A DNA stretch of 64,000 nucleotides from Mytilus edulis. Taxonomy: Eukaryota. Location of the stretch: the NCBI RefSeq assembly GCF_963676685.1, contig NC_092353.1, positions 18,290,001 through 18,354,000 of the forward strand, read 5' to 3'. This document shows, one piece after another, positions 16,054 to 63,288 of the stretch. A model generated the notes under the pieces. The model saw only the letters and a program-made list of their open reading frames with translations. It did no database searches and had not been told where the DNA came from. Each line of letters starts with the position of its first letter. Position 1 is the stretch's first letter. The position numbers and the translations under genes were made by a program.

Positions 16054-19000
16054 TTATAATTTGTGTACGCTATCTGGTACATTTGTCATATGAGGTGCCG
16101 AAGGATACACAGTATTACACACGTCGTCATTGGGTTGATCATAGTTCTCAGTGTTTGTTTGAGTAGTAGTGTAAGTACTTATTGTACTTGGTGCTTTCAA
16201 ACAAATTATTTCCTTCTGAGGAAGTCTTTGATATCCACTGAAAGTTAAAAGAACAAATTGTCAATTATACAAAACTCCCAAAATTGTCTCATATGTTTCA
16301 TTTGTGTTAGATTTTTTCATTGCTCATGGTATAAAACTATCCATCATAATCTTTTATTTGCTTATTATGCTCACCATAAAAAACGAGCTGCTTATCTTTA
16401 CGGGGAACTTGATCGAGTTCATCATGGTTTGAGATTTGTGTAACTCAATAATAAATTATCTGTAGAAACATATGTCGCGAACTATTATTATTCATTTTTC
16501 CTTTGGTCATTGTGCAGTTTATCAATCTTTGTATCTTTTTATGCTTTGAATTATTAATTGTCAAGTGATTAAATGGTATTTCATGTAAATAACCCGTGGA
16601 ATGAAATATAGAACCGTTTTGCCTCAACTCTCGCCAACTCTTTAACTATTTTCTTTGGTGTATTTTGTTTTAACAACATGTGCAATGAATACGGAAATAC
16701 TTTGTTTTGATTTTAATTTGCAAATACGTCGCACCTGTTTTTGGACAGAAAAACACTATAAGAATCTTGATTTTAGGCTGGTCTCGAATGAGATAATTAA
16801 GAAAGCAGGCTTTCTTTTTTCGATTATTTTCTATCATTTCTCTTTTTCATGGTTGACACCAATAGACCTTAAATTTTCATCAATAAGCCTCACCTTGTTC
16901 TCTTGCATCCGTATGTTATAATCACAGCTAAGGTAATAACAAATACGAGAAACACTGCACCAGACGATACTGCCACTGTGTGCCACAACTTCCATTCGTT
17001 TTGTGCTAGATTTGTATAGAATAATTCGACAAACTAAATTGACAATAATGATAAACAAAAGTTAAGATATATCACCTAATAATTACTCCAATAAAATAAT
17101 TTCTCTCTTATCTTCTCAGCTGTTTTATGACTTATGACTCAGTAAATACTTAGTTGGCTCGAATGCCCCGCATCTACTGTTGCTTTAATAAATTCGAATA
17201 ATCATCTTCAATAAACATTTTTTTCTTCATTCCATCCAATAGACCCAGCTGTTAATTTAGACATATTTTCATGAAGTCAATCATTACAGCTTTTGTTAAG
17301 TAGCAAAATTTGTCATGAAAACATGATGAAACCTATATATCTTTGCATGGTGATGTGAAGTAAATACTACGTACCATGCTGACATGTATCGCCATGAAAA
17401 CATTCCTGACAAAGACATCCGGGCATGTTACCAACAGCTACACATGATCCACCATTCTGACATTCTCGTGAACAAGTAGCTTAAATGTAAAGAATAGAAA
17501 GAATATCGGTCGAGACGATATTTAATATAAAAACTTCAAAGCATAGTACATTTCAATTATTAATGGGGTTTTACTTTCATTTAACACAAAACACACTTCT
17601 TTTAGGGAAAATCGTATGAATTATGGAATACTGAATTTATTTTAAGTAACATTGTTAAAATAATAATAACTCTATAATTTGTTGTTACAAAACTATTGTT
17701 AATCAGTTTGTTTCTTCTGGACATAGCGCATATTTAGAACGAACTCCTTCCTTAAAAACCCTTTCTAAATTATCTCATTCGACACTAGCCTAAAATCAAG
17801 ATTCGGCTTAATATACTAAAATCTGTAACTTAGTTATTCAATCTTAAGTCACTATATCTACATAGATAGTTATATCTTATTTTCAAACATTTCATTATAC
17901 TTACGTACTGTACATTGTCCAGATCCATCTCGTCCCCACCCTAAACAGCATTCTTCTATTTGATGATAACGAATGGCGTATTTTTGTTTAGGAGTGAAAC
18001 ATGTTTGTATTCTGTAATGGTAAATTCAAAATTTAAAGCTTAAACAGTCTCAGTATTTTCAATCTCTTGTCATGTATACTGTGATTGTCCCTTTCAGAGG
18101 TATTGTCATTCGCTTCTTGCTATAACGTTTTTTTTTTTAATTTATTTTCGTTCCTTATAGTTAACTGTACATTTTTAGATTGTTTTTCTCGTTCATGTTG
18201 TAAGGAATTACAATTTGACACGTTGAAATGGCGGTATTTTCAAATTTTAGGGTTTTCGTTTTTTCCTGGCATTTACATCTTATGTGTGTACTTAAAAATT
18301 CCAAAGATCTTTTAGAGTACATACAATCTAACTCTCTTTCATCTTGTAACAGTATTAAAACATTTGACTTTTCTACTCTTTACACTAGTATTCCACATTC
18401 CAAACTAAAAGACAAATTGAAAGGGTTGGTATAGCTTTGCTTCATTAAAAAGAATGGCCAACGTAGATACAAGTATCTTGTTTTAGGGGGGAGGGGATAA
18501 ATCCTACTTTGTAAAGGATCACTGTGATTCAAACAAAAAATTCTCTGAAACTGATATTATCAAGATGCTTGATTTCTTGATTGACAACATATTTGTTACG
18601 TTCGGAGGACGTGTTTTTCAACAGAATGTCGGCATTCCAATGGGAACAAACTGTGCCCCTCTACTTGCCGACTTGTTTCTTTATTATAATGAGGTTAACC
18701 TCATGCAGGAACTTCTTGGGAAGAAAGATAAGAAGTTAGCAATATCCTTTAACTCTACTTTCTGCTATATAGATGATGCTCTTTCACTAAATAATTCAAA
18801 ATTTGGAGACTATGTGGAACGCATCTATCCCATCGAGCTAGAGATAAAGGATACTACAGATACAGTTGAGTCGGCCTCATATCTTGACTTACATCTAGAA
18901 ATTGACAATGAGGGTCGGTTGAAAACAAGACTTTACGACAAAAGAGATGATTTCAGCTTTCCAATTGTCAACTTTCCATTTCTAAGTAGCAACATTCCAG

Positions 19001-34000: not shown

Positions 34001-37000
34001 CTCGTCAGATTTGCTCTAAATGCTTTGGTTTCAGAGAAAAAAGCCAAAATCTATATTTTATCCCTATGTTTTATTTTTAGCCATGGCAGCCATCTTGATT
34101 GGTGGGCTTGGTCACCGCACATATTTATTAAACTAAATACCCTAATAATGAGTGTGGCTAAGTGTGCTTAAATTTGGCCCAGTAGTTTCAGAGGAGAAGA
34201 TTTGTGTAAAAGATTACAAAAATTTACGAAAAATTGGTAAAAAATAACTATAAAGGGCAATAACTCCTTAAGGGGTCAATTGACCATTTTGGTCATGTTG
34301 ACTTATTTGTAGATCTAACTTTGCTAAACATTATTGCTGTTTATAGTTTATCTCTATCTATAACAATATTCAAGATAATAACCAAAAACGGCAAAATTTC
34401 CTTGAAATTACCAATTCAGGGGCAGCAACCCAACAACCGGTTATCCGATTCATCTGAAAATGTTCAGGGCAGATAGATCTCGACTTAAGGTAACACGATA
34501 CCGAATGACGTTACGCCACGAGTTACCGTTCCTGACGTTATCGAATAACGTTCACACAGACAAGCCAATGTAGCAGGTTTTCACAAAGTGATTAAATGAT
34601 AAAAAAGAAATATTTTTGATTACTATGTGACATTTTTAACGGTAACTTTTTCTAGATGCAGAGTGCCGAGAGTTTTGATGCAATATATAACGGTTAACTT
34701 ATTTGCTTTATCGTTTTCCGGCAATTCTACTACTCATCGTTAATCTTGTATTAAAAATGTATTACATTACTTTTAAATATTCTGTTTCTTTAATATTTAA
34801 GCATCTGAAAGATTTATCTATATATGTTCTTATGCATAATAGACTGAGTTTTATCACTTTATTTTATTCTTGGTTTATTTTTGCAATAAATACTTATTCA
34901 TGATGCACGCCGTATCCCCATCAAAATTCTGTTTTGAAAATAGAAATACAATCTATAGAAACTTAGTATGATGTGTAATAAACACTGGCAATTGTACATC
35001 TATTAATTCTTGTTATAAAAATGGTCGTTTAAAACACCGCTCGATCAAAATGGAAAAAGGAAATTTATTTGGATGAGAATACGGATAGAATTAGGCGAGA
35101 AAAACACAATACAAGCAGACTTTGAAACTCATACAGAAAATAGTTTGTTAATATGGAATGCAAAGAAATGGTTTAACATGGTAATTTTGCCTAATGACTT
35201 TCTCTGTGTTCCAGTATAAACAGTCTCTGAAATTCATTGGTTGTACAGAGCAAATCCGATATAGTTTCGGAAACATTTTAAAAATAAAGTGCTAGATTTG
35301 TAGTCCTATAGACAGTTGATAGTCGGGACCGGCTCTAATCAGACTGGTTCCGTTACAAAATTTTCTCTCGAAAAAACGACTGACTAATTATTATTCAAAC
35401 GGTAGAAAGAGACTGAAATAGCTAGATCTTGAAATCATTTAGATTTTATATTCGTGTTAATTTACGCTTGCATGGGTATTCGGTGGTAGTGTGTTTTTCA
35501 GTTTGTGTGATTAGAGATGGAAATAATTATATATAATGTACATGTACAAGTTCGGAGACAAAACGACTGGAAGAGAATTAACATTATAGTTGCCCTTTTA
35601 GGCCCTGAGGGGCATATTGCTCACATACTAGGCGTCGGGAAAAGCCTGAGTTTTTAGAACAAGCATGCAGCTTTCATGTAGATCTATATACATGTAAAAA
35701 AGAACTGTATGTATTTCTTTGTGTGGATAAATATACTATATATATGTTCATTGTTATATAAAATGTATTTGTACTAGCTTTAGAAACACGATGCAAAGCG
35801 AGACTCGCCGAGTTTTCCACTTGTTTCGTAGTGAGTACAAACACGCTTTATATTTCTGACAATGTACATAATTTTTACATTTTGTTTATATCCTACAATT
35901 TACACCCCAAGGGTGACTAGAGATGGTCACTTGGTCTTATTTCGACCGGCAGTAAAATGCTTTCAAAGTGGGGCGTCCATTTGGCTGTGCGGGTTGTATT
36001 GTCTATTGTTAACTTGTTCTCGTCCTGAACATGCATAAAATATTTGCCACTGGACGTTAATCAACCAGCAATCAATCCTACAATTTACAACCATCACTTG
36101 AAACTTTAGTTGTTAAAATTTAGATTCAAAGAAATCAACAAAGTTTGCGAACATTTACGCACAAAGAATTATCTACGTTACCGCTTGCTCATTATGGAAG
36201 CGGGGCAACATGAGACTTTATTTGTAAACGTACAAATACAAAGAAAAATATATGGAATATGTTATATGTACAACAGTTGGCTGTTAGTATGATAAACGGA
36301 GATATAGGATATGCAATTAATAAGAAATCAACATCTGGACATTTAACGACACCAAAACCAAAGACATCAAGCAAATTGTGACTAATGCTTATTGGACGAG
36401 TATCTTTTTATTTCTAATTTGTAGTTTTAGTAAACGTTGGGCTCTAAATTGGAGAGTTTTGATAAGTTTATGGAGTATAATTATCACAGTAACATTTCAG
36501 TCTCTTAGTACATATTTCTTTAAGTCTTAAAGTCTCTTAGTACATATTTGTTTAAGTCTTAAAACTTTTGTTCTTCTGGAGAAAATTCAAACAAATTGAA
36601 TATTGAAATAAGGAGGTGCGGTAAAATTGCCAATTAATCAACTTTCCCCCAAAGAAAAAATGACTGAAATGTTAGCTTGCTCACATTGCTACTTCATTTT
36701 AGATCTCCATATTACCTTTCCGTTATATGAACTGCATATTCAAAAATATGTTTTGTCACCAAAATCCTAATAGAGCACATATATCATCATATAGTTTCAC
36801 CCATGTCCGTTCGTAGTCTTTTTGCTTCAGGTTTAAATTATGTACCTGGTGTTACTACTCATATTAAAGGTGCGCATATCGTCTGGGTTTTCTTTATTTT
36901 ATGTTCAGGAAAGGTTGCTGGATTATGCATTTTAATAAAATATAAAAGGCACGCAGAGTACAGACTCCGCCTTACATCTCCAACATGTGGAATTTCAAGC

Positions 37001-40000
37001 TGGAACTTTTATATTTCGCAGTTATTTTTACTTTAAAGAATACATATATGATCTCAATATTTGTTTTGTAAATAATTTTCCACAAATGACAGACTGTTGA
37101 ACTTCGTAAAATTTTGCAGTTTGCAATGTTTGTCCGACTTGCTGAGCAACCAACTCACACATTTACACCACGCAGAGTACATTATACTAATGTACGTAGC
37201 AAGTCAAGAATATAAGTTTTGAATTTTTCTTTGAGTTTGTTATTTCACTTTTTAGAATGTGTATTTTTTCAGGATCATTATTTCCACAACTAGCAGAATG
37301 TTAAACCTTTTTTTGACTGGTGCATCAAATGTGTCCTTTATAAACAGCTGTTTTCAAAATTGTAATGTATCGTCCCGAACATGCATGAACTATTTGCCAC
37401 TGAACGTTGAACGACCATCAAAAACCGCGCAACTGTTAACTGAATCAAATTTTTATACTCTATTTCTGCGTGGATGAAGCAATGATACCACCGTTGTCTT
37501 AAATGATGGAGTTAAAAACTCAGTAATTCAAACTAATTAAATTTTGGAATAAAGATATTATTTGAATAATCTTATTGTAAAAATTTACCTGAATTTAACG
37601 TGTTCCAAATTCCGGTGATTTATTTATGAATTATTATCATTAGATTCACGTGGAACCAAACCAACCAGTTCAAGCAAGTTTCAGGTATATGAGCTCGTTT
37701 GGTGTGAAAATCAGACGAGATTAATGGTAATTCATGTGAGTGAAATTTCCATGTGCAGGACGAAATAAATTATATCAGTAGAATTTTATATTGCATTACT
37801 AGGAAATTTACGAAACCCGACATGAGAAATGAAAATAAAAAAAAAATCATTCAGATCCCGACACATATTTTGTTTTCCATATCTCTGAGTAGTAGGAATA
37901 ACGTTACATTCTGTATTCAATAACGTCACATGTTTTCGGTCAAATTCTAAGGGTACCAATCAACTTTGAAGCCATTTATCTCAAAAACAAGGATGGTGAC
38001 ATATGATTTTCTATACGTGTATGGATTCAGCTTGCAATCCTGGATATAACGTTAGTTTTTTGTTGTTCTCCGTATATAAGAACATAGGCATTCATTGGAA
38101 AATCTATAAAGGTAAGCCGAAAAATAGGCATTTCCCCTATATACCTATGTAAATTTGTTGTCAAAATTGACGTTTTCCTATGAAAATACCAAGAAAACAA
38201 AAATGGTGACCCCCATTTTTTATTACATATTCCGATGTAACTCGATTCAAAGAACACGTGTGCCAAAAAGTTTGGAAATCGGGAGATATGCCATTCGGTA
38301 TCGTGTTACCTTAATAAACAATTCAACGCCGTATCAGATTTGCTCTGAATGCTTTGGTTTCAGAGTTATAAGCCAAAATCTACATTTTACCCCAATGTTC
38401 TATTTTTAGCCATGACAGCCATCTTGGTTGGTTGGCCGGGTCACTGGTCACATTTTTAAACTAGATACCCTAATGATGATTGTGGCCAAGTTTGGTTAAG
38501 ATTAGCCCAGTAGTTTCAGAGGAAAATTTTTTGTAAAAGTTAACGACGACGGACGACGACAGACGATGGACGCCAAGTGATGAGAAAAGCTCACTTGGTC
38601 CTTTGGACCAGGTGAGTTAAAAAAGCTCCTTGTAAGCATGCCATTTATAAAGTTTTAATTTTTTAACGGTATTGTTTTGTTGTGCCCACTGGGTTGATGC
38701 CACTGCTGGAGGAGATTTATTTCCCCAACAGTATTACACGCCCAGTAGTCAGCACATCGATATGTTCATAATTATAAATTAACTGTTAACAAAACTTTGA
38801 ATTTTTGAAAAGACGAAGGCTCTTCTACCTCAGGAATAGATCACCTTAGCTGTATTTGGTAAAACTTTTAGGAATTTTGGTCCTCATTGCTGTTCAACGT
38901 CGTACTTTATTTTGCCTTTTAAACATGTTTTGATTCTAGTGTCAATGATGAGTCTTATGAAGACGAAACGCGCGTCTGGCGTAAATAAAAAAATTTAATC
39001 CTGGTATCTATGATGAGTTTATTTGTCTCCATTCATACCGACATCCAAGTTAGCAGTTTCGTTAATGGTTGTCTTTATTGAAACTCGGATAGCTTGCCTT
39101 TAAATGATTTAGTTTTGAATACATATAGCCTTTGAAATGACCTGTAAGCCCATTCATAACTTGTTTAAACTTGGTCTAACAATCTGTTTTCTGTTGATGG
39201 CCTTTTGTTATCCGGAACCTTACTGACAATGCAAAATACAATAATGATATATTTCTTGAATTTCTTAAATAAGTACAGTACACTGCATTGACGTAAAAAT
39301 TACAATCCAACGATATACCTGTATTATATAATTTAAGTCTTCATTATCAAAGATGACTTTGCCTGTTTCATTGTATCCAATCTTTATATCTCCATTATTA
39401 CTCTACAATTAATAAAATAAATAAACGACAGATTCTTTAAATCTCTACATACATCTTCTGAGTATATACAGATGTAAAAGTAAACAGTCTGTAATCTATA
39501 ACGTATTTCTCTCATTCCCGTCTAATCAAACAAGACGGTAGTGTATATAATATGATAGACTTTAACAATTATTGTTTTGTTTGTAGTTGTGTATTATTAT
39601 ACCGATATTTTATGTGCCCTTTCTGTACTCAAGTTTATTGTACACCTTTGCCTTGCCATATTTCACTAATCAAAATAAAAGCTGATAGGGCCTAGAGATC
39701 TTATACATATAAACATGAACACATACATTGTAATTGTCTACATAATGGTCTACTTAGCCGTTCTTTTCATCTGTACATGTCTTTTGAACATTTCGTGTTG
39801 TCCATGTTGTTGTCTCTTTGGCGAAATCGAAATTGAATTTAAACGTTTATAGACCTATTACAATTTATAGGGTTATAAGAGAAAAGTCCTTCTTTGCCAG
39901 TTTTAAGACATAGAGTACATTGCATATACAAATAAAATGTAACATAAACATTTACCTTCATAGTAAAATCACCAGAGGTAGCAGCATGAACTAAAACATG

Positions 40001-40902
40001 AGGTGGAGTTACTAGCATTGGACTGAAAAGTATAAAGTTATTATTCCTTATATTCCATATTAAGGAAAAGGGCAATTGTCACTATATACATGTAGAAAAA
40101 AATATATAGTTTTCTCGTTTGAATTGTTTTACATTTGTCATTTTAAAGCTGAGTATACGGTTTAGGTTTTACTCATTGTCGAAGGCCCTACGGTGACTTT
40201 TGGTTGTTAATTTCTGTGTCATTTGGTTTCATGTGGAGAGTAGCCTCATTGGTAATCATACCACATCTTATTATTTATATATATATATCCTGTTCATTAT
40301 ACAGAAAAAAATAACACAAGTTTGGATGTGATGCACTTTACACGTGTTCATTAAATGACGAATTTTTGTTAGATCATTGACGTGCATATAGGCCTCGCTT
40401 ATTGCAATACCATAAAGAACGGAATTAAAATGTACAATGTAAAGATATAAAAAAATAAAATTGGCGACTCTTTCAAAAAACATAATTATTACAATAAACT
40501 TGACTTGACGGTTAATTGAACTGAATTTTTTTCACAAAATAGAGCTGAAGGATATCAAAGAAATATTCAATCTCATGCATGCAAGTCGAAATCCAACTGA
40601 CAATGTCATGACCAAAAATGAAATGCAAAAGACGACTAAATTACAGACCAGTATACAAAACATAACATATAAAACTTAAGGCTGAGCAACACAAACATAA
40701 TCAAAAACCAGGGGTATTTTTATTTATGTGGAAGATTGTTTGTAAAATGAGCCGCCTTTATTAAAAGGGGCAAATAATGCAATCCAGATTACTGGCTACA
40801 ACTTTAAATATTATAAGTAACTTACTCAAAATTAGTTTGTGATGAAATAATGGAAACAAGAGAAAATCCAAACAGAACAACAAGCGCCATCTTGGCAGCC
40901 AT
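25069..40902 (-). CDS. Paralog A: secreted protein, cubilin-NTD-like segment + He_PIG-like Ig domain + EGF + F5/8 type C domain (365 aa, 9 exons)
   Basis: Exons 40902-40826 (MAAKMALVVLFGFSLVSIISSQTNF), 40022-39956, 39402-39319 (SNNGDIKIGYNETGKVIFDNEDLNYIIQ), 32887-32786 (LILSQPPIWEEHSTFGYIGEF..), 31575-31386 (DPEGQPIVYAIVAGMLPPGVKLEPDSGRIHG..), 31205-31092 (EGF CTKKPCVHQGVCLDETTGYKCYCPNPYGGLRC), 29799-29635 (CRSN..IPDASLTG..GWYG..YLQVDLG), 26230-26085, 25221-25069 (..DTRFIRF..MNMEIHGCHNNL*). All GT-AG with consistent phases, 1098 nt. Exon sizes 67/102/190 are identical to the paralogs. Confidence 0.88.
27222..27346. mobile_element. 125-bp foldback MITE with TAG..CTA termini and ~9-bp TSD (AcademH-/MuDR-/hAT-like), intron 7 of paralog A
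   Basis: Near-perfect ~57-bp arms TAGTCCAAATAATTACGACGTCTGGCAAGGCTATTTTA..CTGGGACGCC / GGCGTCCCAG..TAAAATAGCCTTGCCAGACGTCATAATTATTTGGACTA with a 10-nt loop. Flanks are TACTTGCGG (27213-27221) and AACTTGCGG (27347-27355). Confidence 0.8.
28155..28432 (+). mobile_element. HINE/DINE-1-like (Helentron-derived) non-autonomous repeat
   Basis: AACAAGAATGTG start after an A-run, internal (GACG/GGAC)n microsatellite and short 3' palindrome (GGCCATACATGGGGC), as typical of bivalve DINE-like repeats. Confidence 0.5.
33575..38620 (+). mobile_element. HINE/Helentron-like repeat with internal tandem subunits, split by the Kolobok-like insertion (parts ~33575-34488 and 38311-38620), intron 3 of paralog A
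   Basis: Internal duplicated block TAAAGGGCAATAACTCCTTAAGGGGTCAA at ~33890 and ~34250. The sequence resumes after 38314 in register with the 33961-34200 subunit. (GAC)n microsatellite and terminal hairpin GCTCACTTGGTCCTTTGGACCAGGTGAGT at 38589-38617. Confidence 0.65.
34489..38310. mobile_element. Non-autonomous DNA transposon, Kolobok-like (copy 2, 3822 bp), in intron 3 of paralog A
   Basis: Same 19-bp TIRs, TTAA TSD at 34485-34488 and 38311-38314. Colinear with 717-4633 but with many substitutions and indels. Confidence 0.85.
38685..39025 (+). mobile_element. Single retrozyme-like monomer (same family as 12945-13400)
   Basis: Reverse-complement homology to 12945-13400 (GATGCCACTGCTGG, CCCAGTAGTCAGCAC, AATCCTGGTA) plus a hammerhead motif near the 3' end. 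Confidence 0.7.
38937..38982 (+). ncRNA. Minimal type I hammerhead ribozyme motif, probably inactive (C3->A)
   Basis: TGTCA-aTGATGA-GTCT-TATGA-AGAC-GAA-AC-GCGC-GT-C-TGGCG: core UGAUGA and GAAA, stem II GUCU/AGAC, palindromic stem III ACGCGCGU, GUC cleavage triplet, stem I UGUCA/UGGCG. Confidence 0.7.
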
Positions 40903-42414
40903 CTTTGAATCAATTCTTCGTTAGATGAGCGTAATTTTTGAAGGGAGGAACTTCAGTTGTCTGTCAAGGTATGCTGCCGGCCTCTTCGACCTTGTTGAAG
41001 AAAATATAAGTACGAAGTTACGGACCTACGACCTGAAACCAAGATAGAGATATATTCATAATTATGTTTCTCGGATAATATGAATTTTAATCCATTTATT
41101 AAGTTTTGATGATGATAAATATTACATGTGTTTGTTTTAGTTGCTTTGAAGTTAAGGTTATAAACAAGTTGGAAACTCTTTGTTTCTAGGTGGAAATGAA
41201 CTTTGGATTAATGAACTAGGAAGTAGCCGTATCTTTCTGTAGGAGGCAAACACATCTTGATGACCTCGCTTTCAGCTCAGTTTTTCATAATATATCATGT
41301 CATTGTGTACAATGACCAAAATCATTTTTATGTTGTCAAGATTTTAAAAACATTTCAGGTAAATATTTTTTTTTGAAAAACAAGAAATTAAAAATGTAAA
41401 AACTAATTCTGTAAAACTATTTCTAGAAATTTTGCTTTGATTTTCACTTTAAAATTAGCGAGTTTTGTACTGTTTGCTAATTAGATACATGTAGATAGAG
41501 CGAGAGAGAAATAATCAGATAAGGATTTGCATGTTTGGTCAAGAATTTCAAATCTGTTTGCAATGTGCAGTTGTATATCATTATAAACCTTTGCCTACAA
41601 AATCCCCCCTTTTTTAAAAATAAACCAACTCTATATCGTATGTGGTTGGGAGAAACACTCAGCTCCTTTAGCCGGATTTGCATAATGGTGTGACGATCTT
41701 CAAATAATTTGTTTAAACAAGCCACGACATAAAATTTACTGTCGATTTGCAAAGATTTTTCGTCAACGAAAGATGAATGCAATAATAGTTTTAATATTTA
41801 TCAAACTAGCGAATCAGTGAAATGTTTGGTCTATAAAACGTCCATGTGTACCTCAGCTTTGTATGTGTGTTGTTGACATTTAAAGCACTGTTAAGTTCAC
41901 TCATAGTTTCTTAATCAATTCATTATACAGAATGATACCATATAGGTTTTTGCTCTGAGGTTGTGAATTACTAAACCCGTACGTACGTGGCAGTTGCAGT
42001 AATGCTTAGGATTGCCAGTTTCCCTGATGGAGGGCGGTTGTTCTCTCCGGCACTGTTAAGTGATAAAAAGTGCCCGCCTCGATATAGCTGACAAAGAAAT
42101 GATTTTTAACAATCAGTAAATCAATCTATAAAATTTGGGTGACCTTTCATAATCTTATAATATAATTTTGATGCCTTTTATTATTGGGTTAATATTTTAT
42201 TTGTGCTCACTATATAGTCTTATTTGGTTGCTGCTAAAGTATTATTCACATCTTATCTAGGTTATTTCTGACTGGTCGTATTGAAACATTGGCTATATTT
42301 TTAGCTCAGTTGTGTTATCGTAATATACCATAGTTTAGTTTCCCAGATAAGAACAGTTTATGAATTACTGATATCTAAACGTTAGTTAAACATACATTGC
42401 CAAAATCACAAAAA
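40903..42414. promoter_or_regulatory. Divergent (head-to-head) intergenic region between paralogs A and B; candidate bidirectional promoter
   Basis: The ATGs of A (40902, -) and B (42415, +) are 1.5 kb apart and point away from each other. TSSs are not determined. Confidence 0.45.
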
Positions 42415-45400
42415 ATGGCTACCATCAGCGGTTTAATATTATCTGCATGCTTCTTGACAATTTATGCGAGGTAAGAACTTTTAAATAATATATCACAATA
42501 TTTAATAAAAACATTAACAAGACATACATAACATACAGATGCTTTTATATATACATTGATGGTAACTCGACAATTTCAAATTAAAACAATCTGAATTAGA
42601 TAATTTGTTTTAAAGTTAATATAGATTTCCATATGTGTGTACTTTTTTTCGAAATTTAGTTTCAATTGACATTTTTTATTTTCAAATCTAAGATTGCCTC
42701 AAGTTTTAACTGAGGTCCGCCTTGCTCATTCTATGTTGTGTTTTGAGTACTGTGTACTGTTGTTTGTTTGTGTTTTTTTTTGTACTTTTGTTTTTTTGCC
42801 ATTGCGTTGTTTTTTTCGACTTTTTTGTTTTTTGTTGTTGTTGAGCATGACTTTTTTTGTACTGCTTTAGTGTCATGCATAAATAACCCATATCATTTGT
42901 TTTTCTATTATGAGTTTGAATACCCCCTTGGTATCCTTGGCCTCTCTTTTTCTGTCATTTTTTTATTCAATGTTTATTCATTCATACCTTGCACTGTATT
43001 GTACATTTTTATTATTTATATATGTTGTTATTTGTTTTTGTTATAACATTTCATTCGTTTTATCTTCAAAAACTGAGTAAAAATTTCTGTTTACCCATTT
43101 TATTTTCAGTTTCTTTGACATACAGTACCCTAATGTGTACATAACAGCCGAAAATGGAGGCAATCTAACAATACAGGTAACTATGTTTCAAAATTTAACA
43201 CATATTCATTAAAAGTTTAGTAACTGCTTATCTTATATTACCAAAAAGATGCAGAACATGTCTCAGCAACATTTCATAGTTTTTAGCATATTGTCATATT
43301 GAAAAATTAAATTATTGATGGCTAAGGAATAAGGAGCAAACGTAAATACAAAAATAAAATGTAATAAGAGAGCGAACTGTCTTACCCGGCTTATTCTGTA
43401 TATGTTTCAGTTGGAAAAGGCATAGCTTCATGACAATAGAGCGGTAAAAAATATGCTATTGTTACAAATGTATGATATCTCATTCGCATACATGACAATC
43501 TTTTCTAATTTTGAAGGCAGGACCACAACAAGGCAACATCTTTATGAAGCCAAATGGAAATGGCACTGTTTACATTGGACATACAGATATGCTTAAGTTA
43601 TTTGAGGTATAGTAATTTAAAAAAATATAACACAAAAAAAAAACATAGGTTGCACATTGTCTTGTTAAATACTTAAATTTGTTTTTATGTTTATATTCTT
43701 TCAATTCTTCCAACCAGAAGCATATTTTAATTGATTAAACAAACATTAACACCTAACATTTTGGTATAATAAGCCTATATTATATCATGTCTGCGAATCA
43801 TGCAAAACTGATTTACATTTTCATACAGAATTGTGCAAAAAGTAAAATCACAAAAATACTGAACTCCGAGGAAAATTCAAAACGGGAAGCCTGGTCCCTT
43901 TGGTCCATGAGTCTTATTGCTTCGTTTATCATGTGAACCTAATTTAGACAAAAGCTTAGCCGTAGGTAGTTTAAACGTTTTTAATTTGAGTATGCGGAGG
44001 GCCACAACACATCGATTGTTGACCCTATTTGCAAGGGTTTTGTGAATTTACCAAAACTACAATTTGGTCCTACGAATGGACAACAACACCATTTCATGTC
44101 ATGTTAAAATGATATTTGTAACTATAACATAAATATTTTGAAAAATATTGCAATGCTTGTATTTATCTCATAATTATAATAGTTAACAAACTTACTATAT
44201 TTTGTGTTTGTAGATTGTTAACAGTTTACCACCGACATGGAAGGTTAACTCAGCACATGGCAGTCTTGGAGTGTTTGCTGGAGGACAGTCTGTCAACTTA
44301 TTGTTGGAGGCAATTGTAAGCATTGATCATTCCGTTCTATGGTGAAACAATTGAAGCATTTATTAGAGTGGTAATTGGATAAAGAGTCTTTTTTGTGAAT
44401 CATTGCTTTAATTCAGTTATAAAACTTGAACAGAAACATAAAATTATCTTTGTAAGTTGGGCATACATGCGTATACGGAGGGTATTAAGGAACAGAGAAA
44501 CATGAAAACAATCTTACCTAAAAATTAAAAATATATATTAATTGTTATCAGTAACACATTTTAAATATCTTAAGTTTCAATGTTTGAGTTCAAGTTATAT
44601 TTTACTATTTGGTCGCCTTATTACTATGTTTATCAATTCATTATCTTTGCAGGATCCCGAAGGTGGTAAAATGAGATTTGAGAAAGTATCTGGAGCTTTC
44701 CCTCCAGGTGTACACCTTGACAAGACTACAGGTCGACTAACCGGAAATGCACCGGACGTAGATGCTACGTACGAGTTTGGAATTCGTGTCACTGACGCTC
44801 ATGGCAAATATGCTGATCAGATCTTTTCAATCGACACAAGAGGTATACTGTTTTGATCATACGCGGGAAAATGCAATTTTGTGTCCCTTCTGTGTATAAT
44901 ATGTTTTATTTGCTTACGTAGTAATAGTATTTGGCTTTTTTAACTCGATATTCCCTACAGAATATGCAAAATGATGTCATAATCCTGTTTACTAATAAGA
45001 TTGTAGTAGAACATTTTAAACATAACTTTTCTCTAAGTTCATATTGTGCAATGTAGTGATGCGTCATTTTTGTTTTCGCGATATTTTAATATAAAAATAC
45101 ATTTTTTGACAAAGGGCATGTCGTTTAAAGACCCATTTTAGATTTTCCTTTGTTGATGATTACTTGATTACGTGTAATTTTTATACGAATGGTAACTTTT
45201 TGATGAAGTTATGATATGGCTGTTAAAGGAAATTATTCTTATGAACGCATTTAGAGTCTCTTTGAATTGCAAATTTAAAAATATGCGCTGAATGGGGTTC
45301 TACAAGTGTTCAACTCAATTCTGTATGATGCAAGTAAGAGGGCCGAATATTATTATATTTCCAGAGAAGAACCAGTGCAATAGTAATCCCTGTCAACACA

Positions 45401-47241
45401 ATGGTAAATGTGAGGATGCCATAGATGATTACAAGTGTAACTGTACAAATCCGTATGGTGGCTCATCGTGTCAGTTTGGTACGTATTATTTTAATATTTA
45501 TTTGTTGTCTAAAGACTATCAACTGTCAAAAACTTTCCAAAGAGTATGACCGAAATAAATGATTAAATCTCATAATTTAGTTTTACTATAGTGTATAATA
45601 ATTTACCAGCAGAGCTTCTACTATTTTTTCAATCTTTGTTATTCCATTTTTCAATCTTTTTTTGTTATTCTATTTTTATTCAATCTTGTTCTATTTTTCA
45701 ATCTTTATCATTCAATTTTTTCAACATATTTGTTATTCTATTTTTTTCAATCTATGTTATTCTATCTTATTTAATCTTTACTATTCTATCATTTTCAATC
45801 TTTATGATTCTATAATTTTCAATCTTTATGATTCTATTATTCTCAATCTTTGCTATTCTGTTATTCTCAATCTTTGATATTCATTTTTAAGCCAAATTTT
45901 ACATCGATTATTTTATTGTATTAATATTTTGTATACAGATTGTAGAAGCAAGGCTGTTGGTGTAGATAACAGTGTTAAGAGCATACCAGATGCCCAGCTG
46001 TCTTCCCATTACGCTTCTGGAGACCACCCTGCTTCTAATGGGAGGTTAAATAATCCACGTGGTTGGTCTGGTACAAGTACAAGCTCTTGGTTGCAGGCGA
46101 GTATAGTTAATTCATTATATATTTTGAAGATCGTACAACCATTTATCTTTCGTATATCTTGAAGTAAGAGACCTGAAATCCGAGAGGATTCACGTGTAGA
46201 TAATTGTAGTAACCTGAAAATGAAAGTTTGTTCATATTCATTTCATTTTAGTGATCTTAAGTGATCACTTGTTTCTCCATAACACTGTCGTTAAAATAAA
46301 AACTTTAAAAACATGTCAATAAAGTAAACACTTTTATAATTTATGACGATAAAAAAAAAACGGCGTCAAAACATGTCGATAATATAAATACTTTTAAATT
46401 TCAGGTTGACATTGGACACTCTACATCTGTTTATGCAGTAGCAACCCAAGGTCAGTCATCGTCAAGCTACATCAAGACATACAGGGTACAGTACAGTGTT
46501 GATGGAAATTCCTTTACCAACGTTGTCAATGGAACATCTGCAATGGTAAACATATTGCTTCTGTTATAACCCATAACACATACATTGCTGTTCAAGTTAA
46601 TGCATGTTCGGCCGACCTGGTAGTTTTAGTGATTTGAACAATAAAAGCCAATTGATTGTCGTAATGTGTAAATACACTTTCTTGTTGGATCTTTGATGAT
46701 ATTTAATTTGTAAAATGAAATTACTGTCCTTAGGTAAAGGAAGATGTGGTATAAGTGCCAATGAGGCAACTCTCCATCCAAGTCACAATTTATTAAAGTA
46801 AACCATTATAGGTCATTGTACGGTCTTCAAAACTGAGCTTTGGCTCAAACCGAATAGCAAGCTATAAAGGGACTCAAAAAATTACTGGTGTAAAACCATT
46901 TATATATAAAAAAAAAAAGAGAAACGGGAAACGCTTATGCACCACATCAACAAACGACAACTACTGAACATCAGATTCCTTATTTTTTTTAAATTAATAT
47001 TACCCTGTAAGAGGATGGATTATTCTTAATTGACTATCGGCAGCTTACACCATTTAAATACTTAACTATGTTTAGTATTTCTTTTTTACAGGAATTTACT
47101 GGCAGTAGCAGTGTAAACAGCGTAATAAAACATGCATTTCTCCAGCCGGTTACCGCCAGATATATCAGGTTCATACCAAGAACCTATCAAACCAAACCAG
47201 GAATGCGAGTGGAAGTGTACGGATGTGAAATTGTCAATTAA
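42415..47241 (+). CDS. Paralog B: secreted protein, cubilin-NTD-like segment + He_PIG-like Ig domain + EGF + F5/8 type C domain (355 aa, 9 exons)
   Basis: Exons 42415-42470 (MATISGLILSACFLTIYA), 43110-43176 (FFDIQYPNVYITAENGGNLTIQ), 43517-43606 (AGPQQGNIFMKPNGNGTVYIGHTDMLKLFE), 44214-44315, 44653-44842 (DPEGGKMRFEKVSGAFPPGVHLDKTTGRLTG..), 45365-45478 (EGF CNSNPCQHNGKCEDAIDDYKCNCTNPYGGSSC), 45939-46096, 46405-46545 (VDIG..VATQG), 47092-47241 (..TARYIRFIP..MRVEVYGC). 1068 nt. Intron 7 is GC-AG. AATAAA at 47267. Confidence 0.9.
45620..45880. repeat. Degenerate ~21-22 bp T-rich tandem repeat (TTTTCAATCTTTATGATTCTAT) in intron 6 of paralog B
   Basis: About 12 visible units. It produces the spurious F/S/I-rich ORFs 45591-45877. 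Confidence 0.8.
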
Positions 47242-51806: not shown

Positions 51807-53517
51807 ATGAATATAACTAGCTAGTGTATGCAAAACATGCAGAAATAATATTTTATCAAAGGCTACCACAATTTTGTGCTATATATGAAGAGTTTGAAAA
51901 TTTGTTTAGACATTTGACTTTTGTTATAGACAGTCGACTCCTAATAATATATATAACGAAAACATTTACAACATTCCCCCAAAAAATAAGAAACACAAAA
52001 ATTAGACGGTACGACAGATCAACACAGCTACAAATCGCCTTATCTTCACAACGAAAAATATGGCCTCACCGATAGTTTCCATTTTGAAAACTGCATCTTC
52101 AAACCTTCCCCGAGATCCAGTAGCACGAATAGTAAAGCTATACTGCGCATCAACGTCTGGTGCTATGCCATATATCCTACTTCGATCTGATTCAAGATGT
52201 ATTCCTGGAGGGAAATCTCCAGCGACAAGGCTAAATTTTATGCTTCCTCCAGATGGTTCCTTAAAAAAAATAATCATAGTTTATATGGCATAGTTATACA
52301 AATAAAAGTTTAAAACATTACATACTTATTATATGAGTGTGTGTGTACGATTTGTTTACATTACAAATATGTGACAATAAATATTCACAACTCCATTTAT
52401 TTACTGTGTTATTTGAAAAATTTCACATTAGAAACAAAAGGATGAAGTAAAATTCTTACCTTAACTTTCAACGGTATATCAACCTCTCTGCCGCCTTCAT
52501 ACGTTCCAACAAAACCTACATGTGAATGGTTTATCCAAATCGGTGGTAAACTGTACACGATCTGAAATTATAGTAAATGGGAAATTAGTAATTCATAGTA
52601 ATTGTATTTCAATGTTAAAGAAACGTTCAAGAATGCGACAAATTATTCGAATTAGATCTTTAATTGCGTTATCTACATAAATTAAATTTTCTCGACATTA
52701 CTACAAATTAAGTTGCAGTAAAAAAAATTATATTATCTAGAATTAAGGGTTAATACGCGAACTTTGCAACAATGTTTGAGTGATAACGTTTTTCACCAAT
52801 ATATAAAGAAAATGAAAAAATAAAATAAAATCTGCCATTGAATCATTTAATAGAATCTCCATAGTATGATATTGACACATCGATTAGATCCCTGCACAAA
52901 CCTTAACTATCTCTAATAAATCGATGCCTTCAAAATAAGCTGTCCCTGTGCCATTTCCTGGATTGATGTGGATATCTCCATTTAGTCCGGACTGAAATTA
53001 CAAAATCAGAGGTTTTGCTTACACTAATAATCAAACACATTGAAATATTAATTAACCTTACTGTATGAATTTTGCGCAGAAACTATTTTGAATAATGACG
53101 TCAAGCTACAAATCCAGAAAGTATCTATGTAGCAATATAAAGTTTAAATTCACTATTTTCCCTAAAATTATCAGAGTATAGTATTTACCTCAGCTGTTAA
53201 ATTTCCCTTTTCTTGTGCAGCTACTGTTATACTTGGATAGTTCATTTGCAACACCCTAAAATCAAAAGATAATCAATAAGTATATCAAAGAGAAAAATTG
53301 AATTCATATTAAAAGTTTTACACATATAATTTTAACATTTACTTTACTTTACTACATTACATATCATATTTAGCATTCGAAAGTCGATTCGGTAATATTA
53401 AGATCTTTATTCCAAATTCTGTTAAAGTGATTGGTATAAAAAATTTACTCACTCTCCTTTAGATCCCGTAGTTATCCATATTTGTTGTAGAAAAACGAAA
53501 ATCAAACACAAAATCAT
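50132..53517 (-). CDS. Paralog C: secreted protein, cubilin-NTD-like segment + He_PIG-like Ig domain + EGF + F5/8 type C domain (357 aa, 9 exons)
   Basis: Exons 53517-53453 (MILCLIFVFLQQIWITTGSKG), 53255-53189 (VLQMNYPSITVAAQEKGNLTAE), 52991-52902 (SGLNGDIHINPGNGTGTAYFEGIDLLEIVK), 52561-52460, 52259-52070, 51755-51636 (EGF CQYEPCHNGALCNETNVGKGYECVCADFYGGKDC), 51339-51172, 50824-50694, 50272-50132 (..TARFVRFHP..PCMKVELYGCIL*). All GT-AG, 1074 nt. AATAAA at 50054-50049. Confidence 0.9.
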
Positions 53518-59900: not shown

Positions 59901-62900
59901 GAACTTCCATTTTGAACACAGAATCAGCATATTTCGTTTGATTGTTGATGGCTCTAATAGTAAATGTGTAGAAACGTTCAATGTCAGGAACTACACCATT
60001 TATAAAGCCACCCGTTTCATCAAGAGTCACACCAGTTGGCAAGTCTCCACCCACCAATTTGTATTCTAATGGTCCATTTTCAGGATCCTGCAAATAAACA
60101 AAAGTCGTTAAAAATAAAATATGTATACAACTATTTTACCATAAACTTCTGTAATCCACCAAATGATTTACCATCATGTGCTGTGGAGTTAAAAATCCCT
60201 AAGATCTTTTTTAATTGAATAGGGGCTAATAAAATGTAAAAGAATGCATTTGAAGAATATTTAAATATATAGACAATACTTACTCTTGCCTCTAATTTAA
60301 CATGGATTCGCTGTCCGCCATTAAATGTTCCAAAGAATCCGTTGTGTGCATGAGGTAGCCACACTGGAGGTAATGTTTTTGCCATCTGTTCAACATGTAA
60401 TACAAAGAAAACACAATTTAATGGCGTAAATGGTATAACGGATTATACTATATCTATTTAATTTATAACCTGTGAGTATCATCTTTGTTTATATTGTAAA
60501 GGAGTTACTCGAATACAACGTGACAAGCTGTTCACTGACTGTAGCTTATGCAATCAAACAGAGTTGAACATCATTCTAAGATGATAACTTTAGTCATCAA
60601 GGGTTTTATCAAGTTTCTACGATTGAAAACTGACATCATTATTATTCGGTGTGAGCCAAGGCTCCGTGTTGAAGACCGTACATTGACCTATAATGGTTTA
60701 ATTTTATGAATTGTTATTTGGATGGAGAGTTGTCTCATAGGCTTTCATACCACATCTTCCTATATCTATCATTTCCAACGCCTCGTGCCTCATATAGGGT
60801 GAGTACATTCATATGGGTCTATGTGAACTTGTAACAAATGGTTCAAGCGGCCATAAACGACAAAGTGTAAGGCACAATGCCATAACTTGTTCAACATTCT
60901 CTCATATTTCAGTGGCAGTAGAGTGTCTCGCCTTCTAACGCGACCTTCTTTGCGGAATAGACCTTTTGTAGTAATTGATAATTGTACACATTATTTCAAT
61001 ATGCATGACATATTTGACAGTGATCGTTAACTGAAAAATAAATCAACTACCTTTTTTTCAATCAAAGAGGATTTTTGTTACCTTAATGATCTCCAAAATG
61101 TCTTCTCCATCAAATATAACTTTCCCGCCTGGTCCAGGCTCCAGATATAAATCTCTTGCAAGCCCAGACTACAATGTAAGTGCATATTAATTATCAAACT
61201 AATTTTTATACTCTTTGTTTATAATAATTGACACAAGATACATGAACAGTTTGCAGAAATCATTGGTTTAAATGTACAGTACAATTTTACTCAAATGTTG
61301 TATGCTATGCAACGATTGTTATTAATCGTTCTAAAACAAGGCTTTTTTTCTTAAATTTGATTCGTACACATCCAACTGATAATTAGAAATTAGTTGCTGG
61401 AAATAAGTGATATCTTTTGCACTTTATTTGCAATAGTTTATATGTTTAAACGGACAAGAAAACAAAGTAACTGCTATTAAGGTACCATTGTTGTAAATCA
61501 AGTTTTAGGTTGGGTTCGTGTTGCTCAGTCGTTATTCTTCTATGTTGGGTAGTAAACTGGTGTTTGCCATTGATTCGTTTTTTGCCTCTGCATTGTCAGT
61601 TTATTTCCGACCTATAAGTTTGAATGTCCCTATGGTATGTTTCGTTGTCAGTTTGTTTTAGATTTATGAGTTTGACTGTCCCTTTGGTATCTTTCGTCCC
61701 CCTTTTTTTCGCCTCTCTTATATAAAAAGCTATCAATGAGTGTATTTTTCTGTGGTTAAACTCCCATACTTAGATTTTTGAATATTTTATAAATATTTTT
61801 TTGCATTTGGCTCATTTATTTCTTTCCATTTTAAATCTAAAGGATATAGCGGAAACACTATTGCTCCCTTTCAAATAAAAAATCTTTTACCTGGAGCGTA
61901 ATGTTTCCTGTATTCTGTGCCTTTACTGTCAAATGTGGTACATTTATATCTAACACCCTAAAATATAAAAATACGATTAACTGTAGTTATACTTATTCTT
62001 CTTTTTGATGTTAAGCTTGGTTTTGCTGGGTAGAGGGTATATTATCCACCATCCATAATTTATAATATCAACCATATACAAGTACATATAAACACTTAAC
62101 AGGATCTGCTTACCCTTCCGGAGCACCTGAGATCACCCCTATTTTTTGTGTTCGTGTTGCCTTTTCTTTAGTTGTCTATGTTGTGTCATGTGTTCTATTG
62201 TTTTTCTGTTTGTCTATTTATCTTCTTTCATTTTAAGCCAGGCGTTGTCAGTTTACTTTCGATTTATGAGATTGACTATCCCTTTGGTATCTTTCGTCCC
62301 TCTTTTAACTATATACACGTGCATTGGAAAGTAAAGAGTTAAAATGTGTATGAGCAACTTGTAACATAGTCACATATACTCAAAATATGCAGTTTAAAGC
62401 AAAAAGGCAGATGTTTAGATTTAAACGACTGACATAGACAAACACAGATTGTGACAAAACCAGTTTAAATTCGATAGCGAAATGTACTCTTAAAGGCTTT
62501 TTCCCTCAAATTTGATTCGTACACATCAAACTGATAATTAGAAGTTAGTTGCTGGAAATAAGTGATGTCTTTTGGACTTTATTTGCAACTGTTTATATGT
62601 TTAGGGTTAATCCTGTCATCTTATTACTTTAAAAATTGTGTGCTCGAAACACTAGTCATTAGGTACATTTGTACGTTCATAAAAAAGATTGAAATCCAAG
62701 TATGTAAAAATTCTGAAATAATCGACGGCAATTTCAATAAAATGGACACAAAATAACAAATACATCCTAAGTCAACTTTGCCCGAGAGAATGGATCTAAA
62801 GTTTCTTTCAATTTTATTCTACATTTCAACAGAGAATTTAATAAATGTATGTATTAATCATTTTAGTATCAAAGCAATTACTACTGGGCTGAATATATCA

Positions 62901-63288
62901 TCAGTGACTACTAATTTACCAGACCATCAGCTGAATCGACCCAGCACAAGACAATGAGAATAACACGTTATAAATTTGGTTTGTCGGAAGTGCTCTTCTG
63001 CATCAAAAACGTTCAAACTTAATGAAATTAAGCAATGATGTATTATTACTTGAATGCATGATGTTATTTTACAAAAAGGGACCCGAAAGAATAGCTAAAT
63101 TAACCCAAGGTCAATATCGCCCGAGGGAGTTATCACCGTAGCTTAAAATTGTATATGTTGTTAGTATGATTTTTAAAAATGTACGTTACAATAGATATGA
63201 TACACTGTTAAACGTAAATTATTCGAACTCACCCATCATCAGCTGCACTTTTTGAGAAGAATATCAGTAAAACATACAATATCTTCAT
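56988..63288 (-). CDS. Paralog D: secreted protein, cubilin-NTD-like segment + He_PIG-like Ig domain + EGF + F5/8 type C domain (349 aa, 9 exons)
   Basis: Exons 63288-63233 (MKILYVLLIFFSKSAADD), 61957-61891 (VLDINVPHLTVKAQNTGNITLQ), 61168-61082 (SGLARDLYLEPGPGGKVIFDGEDILEIIK), 60385-60284, 60087-59898 (DPENGPLEYKLVGGDLPTGVTLDETGGFING..), 58578-58462 (EGF CKSSPCQHHGTCIDNSNNTYTCVCPEPYSGHSC), 58035-57871, 57545-57415, 57122-56988 (..LARFVRYHP..PCMKIELYGC*). All GT-AG, 1050 nt. Confidence 0.9.
62098..62306 (+). mobile_element. Short copy of the 3' tail of the Penelope-like element (non-autonomous derivative)
   Basis: CAGGATCTGCTTACCCTTCCGGAGCACCTGAGATCACCCC...CTTTCGTCCCTCTTTT is nearly identical to 19345-19547. 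Further decayed copies at ~25830-26020(-), ~40540-40715(-), ~42715-42950, ~55860-56027 and ~61505-61720. Confidence 0.8.

Follow-up and report, generated by a model that had tools for sequence, protein, structure and literature searches.

The window analysed here, a stretch of 64,000 nucleotides from Mytilus edulis (contig NC_092353.1), contains four related genes for secreted discoidin proteins, paralogs A to D. Paralog B is a nine-exon gene on the forward strand with predicted splice junctions, set from the genomic sequence alone. Its candidate exon 1 (42171-42226), found by scanning for an ATG, a hydrophobic core and a phase-2 GT donor, contributes the signal peptide MPFIIGLIFYLCSLYSLI and two further bases; it has a weak donor and is assigned tentatively. 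Exon 2 (43110-43176, 67 nt) lies between an AG acceptor at 43108-43109 and a GT donor at 43177-43178 and begins with one base that completes a codon, while exon 3 (43517-43606, 90 nt, 30 residues) is in phase 0 at both ends. Exon 4 (44214-44315, 34 residues) completes a short helix and, with SLPPTW..., enters the Ig domain, aligning with the PP.W that is invariant in the family. A He_PIG-type Ig domain (Pfam PF05345, E 8.7e-9) follows in exon 5 (44653-44842) and an EGF domain (PF00008, E 3e-8), devoid of RGD, in exon 6 (45365-45478). The discoidin domain is spread over exon 7 (45939-46096, its first third), exon 8 (46405-46542, its middle; PF00754, E 3.2e-6) and exon 9 (47092-47241, its end and the stop codon; PF00754, E 9e-5). 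To exon 7 we assigned a GC instead of a GT donor, because only CAG|GCGAGT maintains the frame into exon 8. With the candidate exon 1 counted, the nine exons total 1065 nt and are in frame.

A sequence-only reading had likened the segment 43110-43606 to the trimerising beta-helix at the N-terminus of cubilin. These coordinates coincide exactly with exons 2 and 3. Exon 2, translated as FFDIQYPNVYITAENGGNLTIQ, opens the mature protein with 22 residues, comprising the N-terminal strands and a first G-N-L-T rung, and exon 3, translated as AGPQQGNIFMKPNGNGTVYIGHTDMLKLFE, adds two more beta rungs, GNIFM and GTVYI, and with DMLKLFE begins the short helix. The two exons score 29.4 and 42.0 bits, respectively, with an HMM of the family N-terminus; the 62.9 bits that exon 3 reaches in a genome profile search include the exon itself as one of the profile's four rows.

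The same exon pair, with equal lengths for exon 2 and the same phases, recurs in paralogs A, C and D, all on the reverse strand. Exon 2 of paralog A (39956-40022) reads …PPHVLVHAATSGDFTMK and its exon 3 (39319-39402) SNNGDIKIGYNETGKVIFDNEDLNYIIQ; the corresponding exons of paralog C lie at 53189-53255 and 52902-52991, and those of paralog D at 61891-61957 and 61082-61168, the latter aligning to the cubilin N-terminal region without gaps. Exon 1 of paralog D (63233-63288) encodes the signal peptide MKILYVLLIFFSKSAADDG and matches the junction of the scallop orthologue (...AADDG|VFDIRFP). The peptides quoted earlier for A and D agree letter by letter with the exon translations. The consensus ..GKV.FD.EDL..II, said to hold in all paralogs, does so only in A and D; B, to which the coordinates 43110-43606 belong, and C carry the conservative variants GTVYIGHTDMLKLFE and GTAYFEGIDLLEIVK. 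Exon 3 measures 28-30 codons across the paralogs, the rung loops varying by 1-2 residues, and identity within the module is 21-41%, as in ancient, divergent lineages. A 29-column exon-3 profile uncovered a fifth paralog (E) just outside the window (30.1 bits, E 8.9e-4 in the 1.37-Gb genome), which likewise has both exons. The 20 trimer compositions counted for four genes are arithmetically right and become 35 with the fifth.

The encoded order of signal peptide, N-terminal module, He_PIG Ig, EGF and one discoidin domain belongs to a mollusc-wide family. Database orthologues from chiton, abalone, scallop, oyster, clams and Solemya all keep the N-terminal module in our alignment, and the paralog cluster is old, its tandem arrangement being retained in scallop and abalone. 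The strand-like hydrophobic periodicity of the module has been conserved for more than 500 My, together with its N-x-T sequons (N-I/L-T, N-G-T). That the segment is conserved from chiton to bivalves and finds a fifth paralog is, on these alignments, above chance. Pfam searches of the single exons and of full-length orthologues left residues ~18-85 uncovered, a hit to DUF1522 (E 0.21) being noise. A search with the module alignment was dominated by bacterial He_PIG proteins and gained four further family members, and a homologue search limited to residues 18-85 of the chiton orthologue P0036 returned the query alone. Databases call the family "lactadherin-like", and our search of the literature by name and accession found no paper about it. 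Judged by domain content, such names are annotation from partial domain similarity and not orthology; a reading of the family as orthologous to MFG-E8 or EDIL3 was rejected on the mismatched domain count. We also rejected the segment as a part of the Ig domain, the fold of which begins at the invariant PP.W past the helix, the segment itself being unstructured in the monomer model.

The species' real cubilin gene is found on a separate contig (C2, 58.56-58.70 Mb). Its N-terminal exon (L017:5654-5783) lies upstream of a CUB array with over 45 hits on C2 and has a sole match in the PDB, cubilin itself (6gje_B, E 3.9e-4). The cubilin N-terminal peptide given in the sequence-only reading is likewise confirmed by alignment to 6gje_B. 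Our family N-terminal HMM, built with the database orthologues, comprises 15 sequences and 55 columns. Searched against a six-frame translation of 160 kb, it placed the species' own cubilin exon first (10.9 bits, analytic p 1.7e-5), with a score that was reached by 7 of 20,000 shuffles (3.5e-4) and barely exceeds the noise in the local database, which goes up to 9.6 bits; another cubilin fragment, also from a mollusc, scored 14.9 bits. Reciprocally, the best non-cubilin match of a cubilin HMM among 11,952 local sequences was the N-terminal end of a family member from Dreissena, in the same register (13.6 bits, E 0.03). Comparison of the two profiles by hhalign gave P 0.0072 over 39 columns, again in the same register, at a probability of 3-5% and an identity of 21-23%. 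In the ESM Atlas (7.7 million clusters), the family N-terminus and the cubilin exon share their nearest cluster, with scores of 0.77 and 0.85. Furthermore, the family module and the species' cubilin module both start with one codon-completing base and end in phase 0, at positions one codon apart in the alignment.

Smaller queries were less informative. The exon-3 profile and exon 3 of paralog A, both too short for a decision either way, retrieved no cubilin from the PDB at E<=10 and gave chance matches to ABC transporters and aldo-keto reductases. Four-sequence exon profiles found noise only over the cubilin upstream region, in which the 15-sequence profile later found the exon. Single-exon database-wide searches miss cubilin, and the case for homology rests on the directed tests (p ~1e-3 to 1e-6); a profile match to the cubilin N-terminal domain is obtained in directed HMM and hhalign comparisons and not in single-exon searches of the PDB. 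The proposed likeness holds as regards register, the ~10-residue repeat period, the position at the mature N-terminus and the flanking intron phases. Altogether, these comparisons indicate that the cubilin parallel is real and statistically weak.

Such a signal might also be expected if the stalk were a real trimeric beta-helix that is convergent with cubilin or stems from another triple-beta-helix source, with the G-N-x-hydrophobic rungs and the acidic D-L helix start reflecting the demands of any such fold. The low identity to cubilin and the small score margin over noise are consistent with this. The rungs being repeats within the module, exon 2 shifts register in pairwise alignments, and part of the cubilin similarity may be a generic triple beta-helix signature. 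In addition, the monomer model has structural neighbours beyond cubilin: Atlas look-alikes of the family N-terminus are the phage gpV, Apex and S74 spikes, at TM values of 0.43-0.54 over ~45-50 residues, which carry little weight for such short stretches. Against convergence, however, all profile methods return the same 39-column register, the following helix included, the Dreissena member provides an intermediate sequence, and one nearest ESM-Atlas cluster is common to the family and cubilin. Moreover, the intron phases agree at both module ends, and in both cases the module opens the mature chain of a secreted metazoan protein with EGF domains downstream. We regard convergence as unlikely and common ancestry of the module and the cubilin N-terminal domain as most likely.

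The oligomeric state was approached by structure prediction on the chiton orthologue P0036, and not on paralog B. Three copies of residues 18-86 were modelled as an intertwined homotrimer with high confidence, at ipSAE values of 0.89, 0.89 and 0.87 compared to 0.01 for the best control, where the ipSAE mark had been calibrated on dimers (21 of 30 proteins solved as pairs attained it, and none of 23 solved as single chains). Partner pLDDT was 86-87, and contacts agreed between runs to at least 93%. In the model, residue i contacts residue i+10 of the neighbouring chain, as expected for an intertwined beta-helix, and heptad-like inter-chain contacts at 67, 70, 71, 74 and 77 link the helices, the helix before the Ig domain spanning residues 67-76. 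This prediction speaks for the trimerisation that had been claimed from the letters, although the score may stem from 6GJE-like or phage-spike structures that the model has memorised. The AF2 monomer shows confident Ig, EGF and discoidin domains and a pLDDT below 50 for residues 4-56.

We thus propose that exons 2 and 3 encode a cubilin-type trimerisation module of ~55 residues, by which the discoidin proteins become trimers on a stalk of shared ancestry, a reading to which we give a probability of roughly 65%. On the evidence of the model, the secreted proteins probably function as trimers. Trimerisation itself, the type of ligand and the biological role are what we infer, along the following lines. 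Directly after the signal peptide, the module would start with a pair of N-terminal strands, continue in three rungs of ~10 residues (G-[ND]-hydrophobic-x-hydrophobic) and close with a helix of 10-12 residues (D-L-L-x-I-I). In the ER, three chains would interlock to give one intertwined beta-helix, with a short three-helix bundle as its cap. Each arm of the resulting tripod would then consist of the He_PIG Ig, EGF and discoidin domains, and discoidin heads binding lipids or glycans would gain threefold avidity, for instance as a soluble recognition or adhesion factor. Such an arrangement most likely arose early in molluscs, when a cubilin-type module recombined with other downstream domains.

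A more far-reaching version of this mechanism would have the proteins act as soluble "mini-cubilins", the trimers docking on beta-helix 1 of amnionless to become membrane-anchored or endocytosed, and the five paralogs forming heterotrimers. The genome does hold an amnionless gene (C3:18183278-18186534, three exon hits above the Pfam cut-off) in addition to cubilin, a protein that fails to be secreted unless amnionless is present. Two residues past the conserved Pro, a hydrophobic position (P-x-V/I/L) aligns with cubilin Met44, the centre of the amnionless interface, and open-ended beta-helices require a cap (PMC6283879). By analogy, the single amnionless common to two cubilin paralogues in Drosophila (PMC8710305) could be a precedent for mixed trimers, and the age of the paralog cluster, tandem in scallop and abalone, is compatible with co-assembly. 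Yet the end of the mollusc module that matches the docking face of cubilin carries three extra hairpin residues and an extra N-terminal strand, which could cap the helix from within the protein itself. Other cubilin hallmarks are absent: there is neither a furin propeptide nor a CUB domain, and a helix of 10-12 residues stands where cubilin has a coiled coil of ~50. As to mixing, the rung-loop differences of 1-2 residues may disfavour it, and the paralog lineages are ancient and divergent, sharing only 21-41% of module residues. This version, docking and mixing together, strikes us as improbable, and we are equally doubtful that amnionless takes non-cubilin clients in the form of a five-gene mollusc discoidin family, homo- or heterotrimeric, that binds it via the beta-helix. 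Least probable of all is that the segment forms a flexible N-terminal extension, a glycosylated linker or an extra set of Ig strands in a monomeric protein, as the low monomer pLDDT, the conserved sequons and the position outside any Pfam family might suggest, given that a disordered linker would hardly keep a strand-like periodicity over such a time span, that the trimer model scores confidently and reproducibly while its controls stay close to zero, and that the Atlas model of the segment residues matches spike-type beta structures.

To our knowledge, descriptions of cubilin's intertwined beta-helix are so far confined to cubilin itself; phage and T6SS spikes offer a structural echo. If the trimeric stalk of shared ancestry proposed here is correct, the same module would head a different, mollusc-wide architecture, and the beta-helix would be a mobile trimerisation cassette in animals. 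Mollusc proteins now filed as "lactadherin-like" would gain a testable quaternary structure of one stalk and three discoidin heads, and entry names suggesting that they are orthologues of MFG-E8, EDIL3 or factor VIII would be corrected. Our findings also raise the question of whether amnionless has partners beyond cubilin, for which the pair Cubilin and Cubilin2 of Drosophila hints at some flexibility. Should docking on amnionless prove true, a soluble lipid or glycan binder would become an endocytic receptor, with the beta-helix as a transferable amnionless adaptor in a modular plug system.

Among known systems, the closest counterpart is cubilin's N-terminal region (human residues 36-135, PDB 6GJE, Larsen et al. 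2018, PMC6283879). Both form the mature N-terminus of a secreted protein with EGF further downstream, and both consist of a strand pair, three rungs of ~10 residues and an acidic D-L helix start, in one register in all profile alignments, the likeness covering cubilin residues ~41-85. The intertwined three-chain beta-helix of cubilin continues into a trimeric helix bundle, as is predicted for the mollusc module. With the species' own cubilin gene, the module shares the flanking intron phases, although an additional phase-0 intron divides it. The short helix before the Ig domain differs from the long cubilin coiled coil, which is hinged at Pro103 and leads to EGF1. A He_PIG Ig, one EGF and one discoidin domain, among which Pfam finds no CUB, replace the eight EGF and 27 CUB domains of cubilin; the three extra residues and the extra strand lie at the end that contacts amnionless in cubilin, and the furin propeptide is a feature of cubilin only. 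The family proteins were accordingly rejected as cubilins, being without CUB domains and the long coiled coil.

Phage and T6SS spikes (T4 gp5, P2 gpV / Phage_base_V, Apex, VgrG and S74 tail-fibre stalks) have the intertwined three-chain beta-helix that is here predicted, and the cubilin/amnionless assembly has been likened to a VgrG spike plus tip (Larsen et al., PMC6283879). Unlike these spikes, to which no sequence relation could be detected, the mollusc module is much shorter (3-4 rungs), eukaryotic, spliced and secreted. Lactadherin / MFG-E8 and EDIL3 are, like the mollusc proteins, secreted and combine EGF with F5/8 type C (discoidin) domains, yet they carry a tandem C1-C2 pair where the mollusc proteins have a single discoidin domain; the mollusc proteins also have one EGF, and besides it a He_PIG Ig and the N-terminal module, both missing from MFG-E8. 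Finally, the discoidin I and II trimers of Dictyostelium and the octamers of retinoschisin achieve avidity of discoidin heads through a dedicated oligomerisation device, unrelated to the mollusc module, in the manner that we propose for the mollusc family.

The segment encoded by exons 2 and 3 of this gene family is best explained as a trimerising, cubilin-type module, a reading to which we assign a probability of about 0.65. At the exon level, the observation at window positions 43110–43606 is confirmed. On the plus strand, paralog B encodes the N-terminal module in exon 2 (43110–43176, 67 nt; FFDIQYPNVYITAENGGNLTIQ), where one leading base completes a codon and the 3' end is in phase 0, and exon 3 (43517–43606; AGPQQGNIFMKPNGNGTVYIGHTDMLKLFE), in phase 0 at both ends, each with AG/GT borders. 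The pair recurs three times on the minus strand with the same phases and lengths of 67 nt and 84–90 nt, in paralogs A (40022–39956 and 39402–39319), C (53255–53189 and 52991–52902) and D (61957–61891 and 61168–61082). The peptides that the sequence-only reading gave for A and D are exact on translation; its strict consensus holds for these two copies only, B and C carrying conservative variants. N-x-T sequons lie at 43141–43149 and 43553–43561 in paralog B, the first-rung one (N-I/L-T, columns around NGNITLQ in the family alignment) being kept in most family members and the second (N-G-T) preceding the last rung in B; the Asn may form a structural corner or may carry a glycan.

Comparison among the paralogs and reading of splice sites gave a plus-strand model of paralog B that continues on both sides of this pair, with exon 1 (42171–42226; candidate signal peptide, weak donor), exon 4 (44214–44315; helix end and start of the Ig domain), exon 5 (44653–44842; He_PIG Ig domain), exon 6 (45365–45478; EGF) and the discoidin exons 7 (45939–46096; GC donor), 8 (46405–46542) and 9 (47092–47241; with stop). 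The nine exons sum to 1065 nt, enough for 354 codons and a stop. Pfam matches are confined to the later exons, namely He_PIG (E 8.7e-9), EGF (3e-8) and F5/8 type C; exons 2–4 have none. The window's genes were searched exon by exon, and otherwise database orthologues were used. The apparent GC donor (CAG/GCGAGT, 46097–46098) follows the first discoidin exon, where no GT donor keeps the frame. The signal-peptide exon is clearer in paralog D (63288–63233, minus strand) than in the other copies and plausible in A and C, so that the earlier exon numbering was right and exons 2–3 encode the stretch with which the mature secreted protein begins. The window (C10:18,290,001–18,354,000) comes from a 1.37-Gb animal genome and is AT-rich (~32% GC); no runs of N were encountered. 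A ~4-kb repeat, probably a transposon or segmental repeat, occupies 34480–38316, inside intron 3 (6.4 kb) of paralog A, and recurs at the window start (700–4640), on the same strand and with 60–90% translated identity in all frames; an EGF-like cysteine pattern at 17382–17474 (minus strand) falls outside the family.

A whole-genome search with a discoidin-exon profile finds exactly five family genes. The fifth, paralog E, lies on the plus strand 2 kb past the window (2184–2267 on to 8374 of L009, the stretch G000:C10:18354001–18364000) with the exon order of the other copies; its exon 3 (AGTGGDVILEPGQGGTVYISGTDLRKFIQ) is followed by He_PIG, EGF and discoidin exons, and its exon 2 was not located. 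When a first-discoidin-exon profile was searched against 1.84 billion representatives, full-length relatives of 356–373 residues, with the discoidin domain from about residue 210, were found in a chiton (Liolophura), abalones, scallop, oysters, Mya, Mactra, Solemya and Dreissena. Their records are titled lactadherin-like, MFG-E8, EDIL3-like, factor VIII-like or uncharacterised; in every one the signal peptide is followed by the N-terminal module, PP.W, the Ig and EGF domains and a single discoidin domain. The module reads approximately v-L-x-I-x-Y-P-S-V-x-V-x-A-x-x-N-G-N-I-T-L-Q-x-G-x-G-G-x-V-x-x-x-P-G-x-x-G-x-V-Y-F-E-x-x-D-L-L-x-I-I-E-x-V, amounting to four strand-like units with a spacing of ~10 residues and a short helix after them. 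Counterparts 70–77% identical to paralog B come from Mactra and from a Logan contig of 1250 nt, whose uninterrupted 359-codon reading frame we take to be a spliced transcript of another species, and a B-type copy is present in Haliotis; the paralog lineages are therefore older than the bivalve–gastropod split. The Haliotis rufescens record P0151 (790 aa) joins two family genes that lie side by side, and the locus tags of scallop OWF47457 and OWF47460 are neighbours on a single scaffold of 1.4 Mb, so the tandem cluster seems conserved across bivalves and gastropods.

In cubilin, residues 36–135 start as a hairpin, continue as a beta-helix of three turns in which three chains intertwine, and end as a coiled coil (Larsen et al., PMC6283879). 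The proposal that the family module forms homotrimers agrees well with a model of three copies of residues 18–86 of the chiton orthologue (P0036), which reached ipSAE values of 0.89, 0.89 and 0.87 against 0.00–0.01 in three controls. In calibration, on dimers and mostly microbial proteins, 21 of 30 proteins with structures solved as pairs attained the mark, as against 0 of 23 whose structures are single chains. A pass may reflect the predictor's memory of a solved look-alike. The model has ~300 inter-chain contacts, a partner pLDDT of 86–87 and at least 93% contact agreement between runs. Its best-defined contacts join residue i to i+10 of the next chain (32/42–43, 39–43/49–53, 49–52/59–61), the signature of an intertwined beta-helix, and heptad-like inter-chain contacts of residues 67, 70, 71, 74 and 77 indicate a short three-helix bundle. 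In the AlphaFold2 monomer, residues 4–56 have pLDDT below 50, while helix 67–76, Ig, EGF and discoidin are confident; such is the predicted behaviour expected of an obligate-oligomer segment.

The species has a cubilin gene of its own, seen in a CUB-domain scan of the genome as more than 45 CUB matches arrayed over ~94 kb at C2:58.60–58.70 Mb and preceded by cubilin-like EGF exons; its parts lie on the plus strand of G000:C2:58.557–58.70 Mb, in the stretches L017 (5654–5783), L010 (9090–9200) and L011. Within the intron that separates its EGF exons from the first CUB exons, long retrotransposon-like ORFs (L012:1273–5513; G000:C2:58593273–58597513) contain, judged by eye, reverse-transcriptase/RNase H-like and integrase/recombinase-like stretches. 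A family-module HMM (15 database sequences, 55 columns), run on the six-frame translation of 160 kb upstream, gave as top match a single exon, L017:5654–5783, reading P-R-I-M-T-Q-N-G-H-L-V-F. This cubilin N-terminal beta-helix exon precedes the first EGF exon by ~23 kb, and its only PDB match is 6GJE chain B, cubilin (E 3.9e-4), an alignment that also bears out the human cubilin peptide given in the sequence-only reading.

The match scores 10.9 bits over HMM columns 16–54 (analytic p 1.7e-5), a score reached by 7 of 20,000 composition-preserving shuffles; a cubilin fragment of another mollusc scores 14.9 bits. Among 11,952 local sequences the best non-family matches are four cubilin fragments, by a small margin over a noise ceiling of 9.6 bits. 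Reciprocally, a cubilin N-terminal HMM finds its best match outside cubilin at the start of P0141, the Dreissena family member (13.6 bits, E 0.03), which by hand count has ~15 of 38 residues in common with the cubilin exon in unchanged register. Alignment of the two alignments with hhalign gives P 0.0072 over 39 columns in the same register, at a probability of only 5%. In the ESM Atlas, a single cluster out of 7.7 million (104 residues, 57 members, eukaryotic) is the closest to both the family N-terminus (score 0.77) and the cubilin exon (0.85), either score being by itself only a lead. Furthermore, the cubilin exon has the family's phases (one leading base completing a codon, 3' end in phase 0) and ends one codon from the aligned exon 3/4 junction. 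The parallel with cubilin thus stands on directed and reciprocal HMMs, hhalign, the Atlas and intron phases, whereas PDB searches with single family exons did not reach cubilin; since the rungs repeat one another internally, pairwise alignments of exon 2 shift register by one rung. From these comparisons, homology of the two N-termini is probable, not proven.

The sequence-only reading had gone further, to possible mixed trimers and to possible docking on amnionless. Neither is absurd, because the genome has amnionless and, in Drosophila, two cubilin paralogues act on one amnionless (PMC8710305). The amnionless gene lies at G000:C3:18183278–18186534 (minus strand; three exon matches above the Pfam PF14828 cut-off), and a sub-threshold amnionless-like match (27 bits) lies on the window's chromosome, 16 Mb off (G000:C10:34438509–34438661). 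The rung loops differ between paralogs by 1–2 residues, and these differences, together with the old paralog lineages, would mildly favour homotrimers over heterotrimers. That family trimers dock on amnionless we consider unlikely.

Set against known proteins, the genes are not MFG-E8 or EDIL3 orthologues, having a single discoidin domain, and they are not cubilins either: their helix has 10–12 residues where that of cubilin has ~50, Ig, one EGF and one discoidin domain come after it, and CUB domains are absent. In cubilin, the open N-terminal face (residues 42–49, Met44 central) docks on amnionless (Larsen et al., PMC6283879). At the corresponding end, the stretch from the conserved Pro to the first G-N rung is three residues longer in the family, and there is an extra N-terminal strand, an arrangement that may self-cap the helix; the counterpart of Met44 is a conserved hydrophobic residue two positions past the Pro. 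The Atlas model of family residues 18–82 resembles spike segments of phage gpV, Apex and S74, echoing the likeness of cubilin to spikes noted by Larsen et al. (PMC6283879). On the trimerising, cubilin-type reading, the N-terminal segment is a variant of a known module within a new architecture.
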